This document shows positions 32,441-45,196 of a stretch of DNA of 64,000 nt, piece by piece. Source of the stretch: Zygnema circumcarinatum SAG 698-1b (lineage: Eukaryota; Plantae; Zygnematophyceae); the NCBI GenBank assembly GCA_037447605.1, contig CM074806.1, forward strand, positions 310,001-374,000, read 5' to 3'. Position 1 is the first letter of the stretch; the number at the start of each line of letters is the position of its first letter. A program made the translations under genes and the position numbers. Under the pieces are notes generated by a model, which did no database searches, was not told where the DNA came from, and worked only from the letters and a program-made list of their open reading frames with translations.

Positions 32441-35400
32441 ATGCAGGCCACGTGGCAGCCTGTGAGTGGCAGCTGCTACGCCACGTGGATGATCCCGGAC
32501 CTGCCACGTGGCAGACCGTCAGCCTTGTCACGCTGCCTTTTCTCTCCCTGCAGAGCGCCACGTGGCAGCTTGTCACAGCTTTGCCCTAACCCTAATTTCC
32601 GCCCCCTTCCTTTACCCCTTCCTTCCTCACCTGCTGCTTTCAACCCTAGCACCCTGAACCCTCGTTTTCAAACCTCGAAGGAGGACAGAATTAGGGTTTT
32701 GGCCCCCCTGCTTCCATGCAGAAACTCTAGGGTTTTTAGGGTTTCTAGGGTCACATGCAGTCATGGAAGCTCTCTTGCGGAGCAAAGAACGGAAGCAAAG
32801 GAAGGAGAAGGGGACGGAGAACGGAACGGAGAACGGAACGGAGTCCCGCCCTATGTTGCGCTCCATGTGCACAGCGACTTCAGTTTGCTCGACGGAGCCA
32901 GCCAGGTTCGTGCATGGAACGCTCTGCACGCCTGCAAATTCCTTGAACCCTGAAACCCTAAAGACCTCCTCAAGGTCTTGAGACTCTGAAACCCTAAAAT
33001 TCAGTTCTAGTTTTTTCTAGCTCATCGACCACTAACGATTTAAACCCCTAAACCTGAGACCCTAAAGACTGGAAACCCTAAAGTAGTGAACCCTACAACA
33101 TGCATAATTCCTCGAAGGTTATTTAGGTTAAAGTTGGTGAGGGGGGATGGGGGGATGTGAGCAGCTCCCGGGGTTGGTCGAGAGAGCGAAGGAGCTCGGG
33201 ATGCCTGCACTCGCTGTCACAGACCATGGGGGTACTCGCTCTCTCTCTGTCACCCTCTCTCTCCGCTGTCCCTCTCTCACCCACTCTCTCTCTCTTTCTC
33301 ACTCTGCTGTCACTCTCTCACCCTCTTTCTCTGCTGTCCTTCTCTCTCTCTCTGCTGACCCTCTCTCACCCTCGCTCTCTCTCTCTCTCTGCTGTCCCTC
33401 TCTCACCGTCTTTCTCTGCTGTCCCTCTCACTCTGCTGTCCCTCTCTCTCTCGCTCTTTGCTGACCTCTCTCTTGGCCTGTTCGTCGCCATCCCTTCCCG
33501 CCTCTCTCTTTCCCTTGTTCTCTGTTGTTTTGTCTCGAATGTGTTTTTTTTCGACAATTCTCCACCACACAGTCCCTCTTCCCCCTCTCCCACATTTCTT
33601 TTCCCCCTCTCTCTTTTTCTTTTTAAAGTCCCCAAGTTCAAAGAAACGGATGTTCCAACCTGAAGAGTAAAGAATGTGCGTTTCCATGTGTTTCCTGTTC
33701 CATGTGTGCAGTTATGTACGGATCCGTACAACTAGTCAAACTGTGCCATAAAGCGGGCATCAAGCCCATCATCGGAAACGAGATGTACATCATCCATGGC
33801 GACATCACCGAGAAAAGACAAGGCCGCGGAAATCAGGCGAAAAAGTATGTATATATATAGTATTTTTTTCTTAAGAAAATCCTAAATTTGACAACTAATT
33901 GGACCCGTTTCCATGTAACTTTAGGGTTTTTTGAGTTTATTTCGGATTTTTGAAGCTTTTGGGGTCTTTAGGGTTTCTAGGAATTTAGGGTTTTGTGTGA
34001 CACCTGGCAGCGTGTGAGGCTTGGTTGACCGATCTTGACTTTGTTTGACTTTCTGTACCGCATGGGGCCAGGTTCCATGTGACAGTTTTGGCAAAAAATA
34101 AAACCGGATATCGAAATTTGGTGCAGCTCACCACCATCTCTCAGTTGCAAGGCATGCAGGTGAGCCAGCTGGCAGCCGGAGACGATGCCACATGGCACCT
34201 TCTGAGTGGCTGGAAAATGCACTTTAGGAAGGCTGTTCTTCTTAAATATTTTAAGTATCTTGTCAAGAACTAATCCTAATCTTAAAAAACCTAAAACCCT
34301 CAACCCTGAAACCCTAAACCCTAAAACCCTAAACTCCAAAACCCTAAACCCTAACCCCTAAAATCCTAAAACCCTAAACCTTAAACCCTTAACCCTAAAA
34401 CCCTAATCCTACAACCCTAAACCCTAAAACCCTAAGCCCTTAACCCCTCAGAGGATACCAAAACCCTACAGCCTTTGGAAACTCTAAAATGCAACTTGCT
34501 ATATGAGCGGCTATTTGCATATTTTTTTTTTAAAGATATTGAATTTATTGTTTTTGCAGGGAATTGGAATTTTTGCAAGGCCATGCATTAACAGGTCAGT
34601 TCCATATAACTGAACAAGCGGTCGATCGTTAGGGTTAGGTTTCAGGCCCATAGTTGTTAGGGTTAGGGTTTTGGAGTTAGTCTTTAGGAATAGGGCTTTG
34701 CTTTCATAGTCATTTCGATTTGACTTTCATTTCAACATATTTTTTAGGGTTATGGTTACAGGTAGCTTGCAGGTCTTTTCAGTGAGGTCTACGGTTTAGC
34801 ATTCCCAAAGAAAGAAAGACCTAAAGCCCTAAAACCCGAAACCATTAGAATTCCCCAAAGCCCTGAACCTATATTCGTAAAACCCTGCACCCAAAAACCC
34901 CTACAACCCTAAACCCCCAAAACCGTAAACCCCTAAAGACCCTAAACCCTTACGATTTCCCAAAAACTCTAAACCCTAAATCACGCTTCTCCAAAACCGT
35001 AAGCACCTGAAACCCTAGAACCCTAAATATTTAAAGACCTAAATACCTGAAAACTTAGAAACGCTAAAACCTTAAAACTCTCATTATTCCCCAAAGCCGT
35101 AAGACCCTAAACCGTGAACCCTAAACCCTAAACTCTAACCCTAAACCCTGAACCCTGAACCCTATACCCTAAATCCTGAACTCTAAAGCTTAAACCCTAA
35201 ACCCTAAACCCTAAACCCTAACCCTGAACCCTGAACCCTGAACCAACAACCCTAAACCCTAAACCCTGAACCCTGAACCCTGAACCCTGAACCCTGAACC
35301 CTAAACCCTAAACCCTAAACCCTAAACCCTGAACCCTGAACCTTGAACCTGAACCCTGAACCCTAAACCCTACCCTAAACCCTGAACCCTGAACCCTGAA

Positions 35401-44400: not shown

Positions 44401-45196
44401 ACGGAGGAGGAGGGGGAGAGGGAGAAGAGGGAGAGGAGAAGCTATCGGAGACCATTCAGATCGATGTAAAATGTGCGGTTGAGATCGAATCGGCGAAATA
44501 TGTGTGCATTGATCTGACGGCTGAGGAAGCATCCAATCCTTCAAACCACGAAATGATTCGATCGCTTTTGAGTGAGTTGGGGGGAGGGAGAGGAGGAGGC
44601 AAAGTTTGGGGAGGGCAAAACGGAAAACCAAAAGCTGTAAAATACTTACAGACGATACCGCCCGTACCGGTGGTTGTACGGATTTGGGAAGACGCAGAGC
44701 AGAGGGAGAGGGAGGGAGGGAAGAGGGGGGAGGGAGAAAGGGAGGAGGGGTTGTTCCATTTCGTTGGGAGTGGTGAGAGGGAGAAGGAAAGATATGTAGA
44801 AGAAATGGAAGAGGATGGGGAGGAAGAGTGGGAAGAACCGGAAGTCGTGCTGTTCGGAGCTAGTTTCAATGTGGTAAGTCTCTCCCTCTCTCTCCCTCCC
44901 TTCCTCCCTCCCTCACTCCCTCTCTTCCTCCCTCCCTCTCTCCCTCTTTCCCTCCCTCCCTCACACTTTCCCTGACTCTCCCTCTCCCACAGTTGGATGC
45001 AGAGAAGGCGGCTCGGCGACTCTCCCAGGCCCACTTCCGAGCGAGAGCTCTCCCTCTGGTGGAGAGAGAGGAGGGGGCTGCCCCTCTCCCTCTCCCTCTC
45101 CCGCAGGCGGAGGGGCTCCGCTTGGCAGAGGGAGAGATGAGACTGCGCGGATCACCGCTTCGCTCTTCTCCAAAAATCGAACTTCTCTCAAAGTGA
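32441..45196 (+). CDS. dnaE: Cyanobacterial-type DNA polymerase III alpha subunit with a transit-peptide-like extension; 24 exons, about 1556 aa
   Basis: Exons 32441-32905, 33165-33231, 33712-33844, 34072-34159, 34560-34594, 35701-35761, 36155-36210, 36428-36533, 36678-36761, 37063-37103, 37374-37485, 37699-37782, 38486-38617, 38993-39051, 39341-39408, 39831-39916, 40162-40308, 40571-40777, 41011-41262, 41409-41503, 41887-41944, 42360-42608, 43092-44873, 44993-45196; every junction is GT-AG and phase-consistent. Motifs [109 protein letters not shown]. Start could be 32441 or 32489. Confidence 0.93.
35105..35680 (-). repeat. Interstitial plant-type telomeric array (TTTAGGG mixed with TTCAGGG) in dnaE intron 5
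   Basis: The + strand reads CCCTAAA/CCCTGAA tandem units; more degenerate copies at about 34290-34450 and 34820-35100. Confidence 0.93.
37791..38135. repeat. (TC)n microsatellite of about 340 bp in dnaE intron 12
   Basis: Read directly. Confidence 0.96.

Follow-up and report, generated by a model that had tools for sequence, protein, structure and literature searches.

Nuclear genes of cyanobacterial type for the alpha subunit of DNA polymerase III (Pol III), the product of dnaE, are already known in algae. Jain et al. (2014) described a nuclear cyanobacterial dnaE1-type gene in Galdieria (PMC4316638), and a preprint of May 2026 by Antoine, Burki, Archibald, Pelletier and Delmont (bioRxiv 10.64898/2026.05.23.727376) presents a nuclear plastid-targeted DNApol-III alpha in Archaeplastida. 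According to the preprint, red and green algae have genes for alpha and tau/gamma in their nuclear genomes, Chlorophyta being without them; the proteins have predicted plastid transit peptides (the example displayed is Closterium sp. NIES-68, and Chara braunii is included), and the eukaryotic alpha clade is sister to Cyanophyceae, with red algal, cryptophyte and green sequences monophyletic. Here we report a DnaE gene in a 64,000-nucleotide window of the zygnematophyte Zygnema circumcarinatum SAG 698-1b (GenBank assembly GCA_037447605.1, contig CM074806.1, positions 310,001 to 374,000; all coordinates below are those of the window). Whether such a gene had been reported was a question left by the first-pass annotation of this window; it had, in Galdieria in 2014 and in red and streptophyte algae including Closterium and Chara in 2026, so that a cyanobacterial-type nuclear DnaE in streptophyte algae is not new, and our own results agree with the May 2026 preprint on every point that we could test. 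The state of the PHP site, a clamp motif without a known clamp, the contrast of 23 versus two introns between window and Chara, and a degenerate PHP domain in Mesostigma may be residue-level findings not described before.

The Zygnema gene resembles the DNApol-III alpha of the preprint in being a nuclear streptophyte gene for a full DnaE with an N-terminal extension and the same tree position; it differs in what is described, as exon structure, PHP ligands and clamp motif do not appear in the preprint's available text. Domain order, motifs and the sequence Q..LFDLL are shared with cyanobacterial DnaE, including the split-intein DnaE-N/DnaE-C of Synechocystis and Nostoc, whereas the algal gene is contiguous and intein-free, is interrupted by 23 spliceosomal introns, and encodes a 137-aa leader, G/E-rich inserts and about 45 extra C-terminal residues. 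The Galdieria sulphuraria dnaE (XP_005703203.1), compared by its published description only, is likewise a nuclear archaeplastid gene, nearest to cyanobacterial dnaE1 and with a predicted organellar presequence, but comes from a red alga and carries a mitochondrial prediction. The closest solved structures, Mycobacterium tuberculosis DnaE1 (PDB 5lew, 7pu7) and Thermus aquaticus Pol III alpha (2hpi), have the complete PHP ligand set too, but are bacterial, about 35-40% identical, and without a leader. POP, the organellar DNA polymerase of plants and protists, is also nuclear-encoded, has a presequence and shares the presumed workplace, organellar DNA, but belongs to family A and has an unrelated fold.

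An expressed, intron-rich nuclear gene

Using our own protein-to-genome spliced aligner with the DnaE proteins of Spirogloea, Kamptonema and Mesostigma as guides, we found that the gene spans 32441-45196 on the forward strand in 24 exons, the number given by the first-pass annotation, with exon borders from 32905 to 43092 identical for the three guides. The joined exons form a coding sequence of 4671 nt for 1556 aa that ends in its only stop codon, and each of the 23 introns has GT-AG borders. The first in-frame ATG of exon 1 is the predicted start codon. A 35-nt micro-exon (exon 5) was recovered by the cyanobacterial Kamptonema guide and by Mesostigma. The public Spirogloea and Mesotaenium gene models garble or skip the corresponding stretch, which suggests that the micro-exon is also present, and mis-annotated, in these two species. 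Intron 23 (GTAAGT...CAG) precedes exon 24, which aligns across this intron with the C-terminus of the Spirogloea protein and encodes the roughly 45 extra C-terminal residues.

RNA contigs from four runs of three studies were mapped on 39300-45290 and contained eight junctions exactly as modelled (39408/39831, 39916/40162, 40308/40571, 40777/41011, 41262/41409, 41503/41887, 41944/42360 and 42608/43092). The RNA pieces end at 44872, fitting the last donor site, and the exon 23/24 joint was not among the joints displayed. The check by RNA-seq junctions, proposed by the first-pass annotation, thus held for the eight junctions of exons 15-23, while the joints of exons 1-14 and of exons 23/24 were placed by homology and splice signals only. 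For exon 1, leader included, all 46 sequence words sampled were present in seven RNA runs.

Several G/E-rich inserts lie within exon 23, where the RNA pieces break on G/A-rich low-complexity stretches. We read these breaks as masked low-complexity sequence and not as introns, because two of them measure 44 and 128 nt, neither divisible by three, and the conserved blocks stay in one frame. Small "introns" proposed by the aligner in exon 23 were rejected, as they vary between guide proteins and the open reading frame (ORF) is open throughout. We also discarded, as an artefact of aligning non-homologous leaders, a GC-AG "intron" that the aligner placed within the leader at 32702-32782.

The locus contains two assembly gaps, both in (CTCCC)n-like tracts. 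The guide-protein alignments run without gaps across the exon 10/11 and exon 17/18 junctions, and we therefore regard the coding sequence as complete at both. One RNA contig joins 40308 directly to 40571, spanning gap 2, and probably also reaches exons 13-14; over gap 1, the support for the exon 10/11 junction is gap-free homology only.

With GT-AG borders at every intron, eight junctions seen in RNA and eukaryotic neighbours (a hAT transposase, an SF1 helicase with DUF6469 and an EST1-domain gene), the gene is intact, transcribed, spliced and nuclear, in line with its initial description as intron-rich and nuclear.

Protein architecture, leader and phylogenetic position

Pfam matches on the separate exon ORFs follow the order PHP, DNA_pol3_alpha, DNA_pol3_finger, HHH_6 and OB. 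PF02811 (PHP) matches exons 2-4, PF07733 matches the palm domain, and PF17657 and PF14579 (fingers and HhH) exceed their cut-offs. The OB model PF01336 reached 21.8 bits, under its cut-off of 27; the OB region of PDB 7pu7 nevertheless aligns with this segment, and the orthologues carry PF01336. This OB fold is placed after HhH and not N-terminally as in PolC, and PolC models score far lower. A 627-aa ORF at 43092 matches the solved Pol III alpha of Mycobacterium, E. coli and Thermus (E ~1e-27), among NCBIfam models the cyanobacterial DnaE models NF005617 and NF005616 match best, and the C-terminal sequence can be aligned to its Spirogloea and Mesostigma counterparts as well as to NF005616 (profile positions 176-394 of 449). 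The Chara orthologue scored 1220 bits with NF004226 (cut-off 1002) and 1575 with NF005617, just under the cut-off of 1653. Family A polymerase and 3'-5' exonuclease domains were absent from the exon ORFs scanned, which held family C domains only; no intein was found, the FAEY/CFNKSH split-intein site being contiguous within exon 23. An ESM Atlas look-up returned generic Pol III alpha clusters only, without taxa. The order PHP-palm-fingers-HhH-OB-C-terminal domain read from the letters at the outset is borne out by these Pfam, PDB and NCBIfam matches, and all motifs quoted at that stage are present at the positions given for them. Judged by its sequence, the protein is a full-length family C, DnaE1-type Pol III alpha.

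The palm aspartates of PDIDTDF and KFDILGL, described as intact by the first-pass annotation, are conserved: D547, D549 and D709 align with D401, D403 and D555 of E. coli DnaE. PHP ligand columns were taken from an alignment with cyanobacterial and other DnaE1, and all nine metal ligands are kept (H142, H144, D151 and those in TDHG, GNEMY, FHVTV, CSGC and TNDSH); the set is complete in the window, Chara, Spirogloea and Mesotaenium proteins. Complete PHP metal ligands support an intrinsic 3'-5' exonuclease in Mycobacterium and Thermus DnaE1. These residues suggest a working polymerase with PHP 3'-5' proofreading. The clamp-binding motif QSSLFDLL (43899-43922) aligns with E. coli QADMF and is identical to the cyanobacterial consensus pattern Q..LFDLL; the Zygnema, Chara and Mesostigma proteins all retain it together with the C-terminal domain, and the two suggest that docking to partners such as a nuclear-encoded tau/gamma is retained. 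The Mesostigma orthologue has lost most PHP ligands, like E. coli alpha, and sits on a long branch, with catalytic aspartates and clamp motif kept.

Ahead of the bacterial start lies a 137-aa leader that is S/P/R-rich, basic and acid-poor (one acidic and six basic residues among the first 60), close to the 135 or so residues originally estimated. All seven streptophyte proteins have N-terminal extensions of 125-177 aa that are unconserved, basic and acid-poor, which is the signature of organellar presequences. From this we infer that the leader serves for import into an organelle, the plastid being the most likely one. The organelle targeting first proposed for the gene is thus a prediction that leaders throughout the streptophyte set support.

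An exhaustive HMMER search with exon 23 returned Spirogloea muscicola and Mesostigma viride first, then cyanobacterial DnaE including many split DnaE-C halves. The Spirogloea protein retrieved three Spirogloea copies, Chara braunii and Mesotaenium endlicherianum and then cyanobacterial proteins only, with no land plant or chlorophyte protein ranked above the cyanobacterial ones. A search with the PHP part of Chara, aimed at transcript-derived proteins of Zygnema circumcarinatum, gave cyanobacterial fragments only. Sequence identity between the orthologues and cyanobacterial DnaE is 55-58% across the conserved core, and the best non-eukaryotic matches in unbiased searches were all cyanobacterial DnaE.

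Our tree (57 rows, 1166 columns, LG+C20+F+G4) was built without DnaE of Galdieria, other red algae, cryptophytes, Gloeobacter, full-length Gloeomargarita and Vampirovibrionia. Some of its labelled cyanobacterial sequences came from a scan of contigs with cyanobacterium-like peptide patterns; owing to these patterns the scan gave cyanobacteria only, and it was not used for the question of origin. The seven streptophyte proteins formed one clade (support 100), in which Mesostigma branched first, then Chara, then the window protein and Mesotaenium next to Spirogloea; this order is that of the species tree and therefore argues for vertical inheritance. The clade was sister to 31 cyanobacterial rows (30 labelled and one unnamed; support 99), and the two together were set apart from Nitrospirota, Rubrobacteraceae, Anaerolineae and unnamed bacteria (support 100). 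Placing the eukaryotes just inside cyanobacteria, after the Synechococcus OH2 lineage, was not rejected either (p-AU 0.19). The description of the gene as cyanobacterial in type agrees with both searches and tree, and the phylogeny named beforehand as a refuting test put the streptophyte clade as sister to cyanobacteria. On this sequence evidence, the gene is of cyanobacterial descent and inherited vertically within streptophyte algae, and its inheritance from the cyanobacterial ancestor of the chloroplast is supported.

The Chara orthologue (BFEA01000333.1, 2001-11193) has two introns only, after residues 23 and 1496, a comparison of positions being uninformative with so few; against the 23 in the window, this would reflect either massive loss in Chara or gain in the zygnematophyte line. 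Typical cyanobacterial DnaE is also present in two metagenome bins with the labels Chitinophaga pinensis and Salipiger bermudensis, probably on mis-binned contigs.

Feature coordinates and genomic surroundings

Table 1. Exons of the DnaE gene, assembly gaps and neighbouring features, in window coordinates.
Feature	Position	Strand	Content	Evidence
Exon 1	32441..32905	+	first in-frame ATG (candidate start), 137-aa leader, PHP start	ORF, model, leader composition, RNA words
Exon 2	33165..33231	+	PHP, TDHG ligand	spliced alignment, ligand alignment
Exon 3	33712..33844	+	PHP, KPIIGNEMY	Pfam, spliced alignment
Exon 4	34072..34159	+	PHP	Pfam, spliced alignment
Exon 5	34560..34594	+	35-nt micro-exon	cyanobacterial and Mesostigma guides; motif position checked
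Exon 6	35701..35761	+	PHP, CSGC ligand	spliced alignment, ligand alignment
Exon 7	36155..36210	+		spliced alignment
Exon 8	36428..36533	+		spliced alignment
Exon 9	36678..36761	+	PHP, TNDSH ligands	spliced alignment, ligand alignment
Exon 10	37063..37103	+		spliced alignment
Assembly gap 1	37357..37366		in intron 10, CT-rich tract, 7 nt before acceptor at 37373	sequence
Exon 11	37374..37485	+		spliced alignment
Exon 12	37699..37782	+		spliced alignment
(CT)n array	37790-38119		between exons 12 and 13	
Exon 13	38486..38617	+	palm start	Pfam, spliced alignment
Exon 14	38993..39051	+		spliced alignment
Exon 15	39341..39408	+		spliced alignment; junction 39408/39831 in 4 RNA runs
Exon 16	39831..39916	+	PDIDTDF, catalytic D547 and D549	RNA contigs, E. 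coli alignment
Exon 17	40162..40308	+		Pfam, RNA contigs
Assembly gap 2	40535..40544		in intron 17, CT-rich tract, 26 nt before acceptor	sequence
Exon 18	40571..40777	+	IPVVRGKP	Pfam, RNA contigs
Exon 19	41011..41262	+	KFDILGL, catalytic D709, fingers start	Pfam, RNA contigs, E. coli alignment
Exon 20	41409..41503	+		RNA contigs
Exon 21	41887..41944	+		RNA contigs
Exon 22	42360..42608	+	fingers, YQEQIM	Pfam, RNA contigs
Exon 23	43092..44873	+	fingers end, HhH, OB, part of C-terminal domain	ORF, Pfam, PDB, RNA contigs
Exon 24	44993..45196	+	C-terminal end including FGASFNV, stop codon	Spirogloea C-terminus alignment
Minisatellite	11088-17773		15-bp unit, ~7 kb	
hAT transposase	23571-25703	-	BED zinc finger, DUF659, hAT dimerisation domain	
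SF1 helicase	28474-31096	-	AAA_11/AAA_30, DUF6469	
Telomere-repeat array, shorter	34286-34450		within intron 4	
Telomere-repeat array, ~0.8 kb	34878-35679		plant-type (AAACCCT)n, within intron 5	
SMG6/EST1-like ORF	60899-61699	+	EST1 and EST1 DNA/RNA-binding domains	

The helicase is encoded by two adjacent ORFs head-to-head with DnaE, across a spacer of about 1.3 kb. The hAT transposase forms an uninterrupted ORF of 710 aa, and the element is possibly active or was so recently. The arrays in introns 4 and 5 are interstitial telomeric sequences in an expressed gene. The minisatellite, with the unit GAGGGGGGCAAGGCC, has a GC content of 0.60-0.64 and a GC skew of about +0.5, and the long ORFs across it had no Pfam match.

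Proposed organellar role and competing explanations

Our preferred explanation, which we consider probable as a whole, joins an expressed nuclear DnaE1 of cyanobacterial descent with import into an organelle and a polymerase role beside POP. The basic leader would bring DnaE into the organelle, most likely the plastid, where, next to the family A polymerase POP, it would act as a polymerase on organellar DNA. Its intact catalytic triad and nine PHP ligands would make it a polymerase with built-in 3'-5' proofreading, the clamp motif and the putatively tau-binding C-terminal domain would allow docking to partners such as the tau/gamma reported in related algae, and its task would lie in plastid DNA replication or repair beside POP. 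We infer from this a second, Pol III-type plastid replication system, as had been proposed from the letters alone.

Several points weigh against this explanation. The accepted plastid replicase is POP (PMC3914683, PMC8227023); the preprint finds no beta clamp gene in any Archaeplastida and a beta clamp only in Pyrenomonadales (bioRxiv 10.64898/2026.05.23.727376), so that there may be no canonical holoenzyme; for the Galdieria dnaE-type protein, TargetP and iPSORT gave a mitochondrial prediction (PMC4316638); and RNA junctions cover exons 15-23, those of exons 1-14 and 23/24 being the homology-based part of the model. It is conceivable, though we hold it only tentatively, that an undetected or non-orthologous clamp and loader complete a plastid Pol III-like replisome, or that DnaE acts as a self-proofreading polymerase whose clamp motif binds a new partner.

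Import into mitochondria, alone or together with plastids, and a role in mitochondrial DNA replication or repair would fit the Galdieria prediction (PMC4316638) and the dual targeting frequent among organellar replication proteins such as POP (PMC6523293), and leader composition cannot separate plastid from mitochondrial presequences; the cyanobacterial origin of DnaE speaks against it, and we regard it as unlikely. Somewhat further down we place the view that DnaE is no longer a replicase but a clamp-free repair or gap-filling polymerase, or a PHP exonuclease, with POP performing bulk replication. The presence of POP in all photosynthetic eukaryotes agrees with such a change of function, as do the lack of a beta clamp gene in Archaeplastida reported in the preprint and the ligand loss and long branch of Mesostigma, the latter two showing that constraint has relaxed or changed in one lineage at least. 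What makes us doubt it is that the full DnaE1 architecture is kept, and that clamp motif and C-terminal domain persist in Zygnema, Chara and Mesostigma. The repair polymerases of the DnaE2 type, as Timinskas is said to have reported in 2014, are without the C-terminal domain.

Descent from the plastid ancestor competes with a later lateral transfer from a cyanobacterium into a streptophyte ancestor. Streptophytes are the sole eukaryotes in our tree, our search and the preprint indicate that Chlorophyta lack the gene, as land plants apparently do too, and the Chara orthologue has only two introns. The streptophyte clade is nevertheless sister to all sampled cyanobacterial families and nested in none, even if the position just inside cyanobacteria is likewise not rejected by the p-AU value given above, and the monophyly of red algal, cryptophyte and green sequences in the preprint argues against such a transfer, which we judge quite improbable. 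Bacterial contamination, misassembly or a dead pseudogene, which the two assembly gaps and the strongly bacterial-like sequence might bring to mind, is ruled out for practical purposes by 23 spliceosomal introns, RNA junctions, an intact frame, eukaryotic flanks and orthologues in four other streptophyte genomes that track the species tree.

The locus adds a read-supported DnaE gene model from an alga closely related to land plants, and at residue level the evidence points to an enzyme that should be active and self-proofreading. The clamp motif is retained in algae from which no clamp gene is known, a puzzle that is open to genetics in transformable zygnematophytes.

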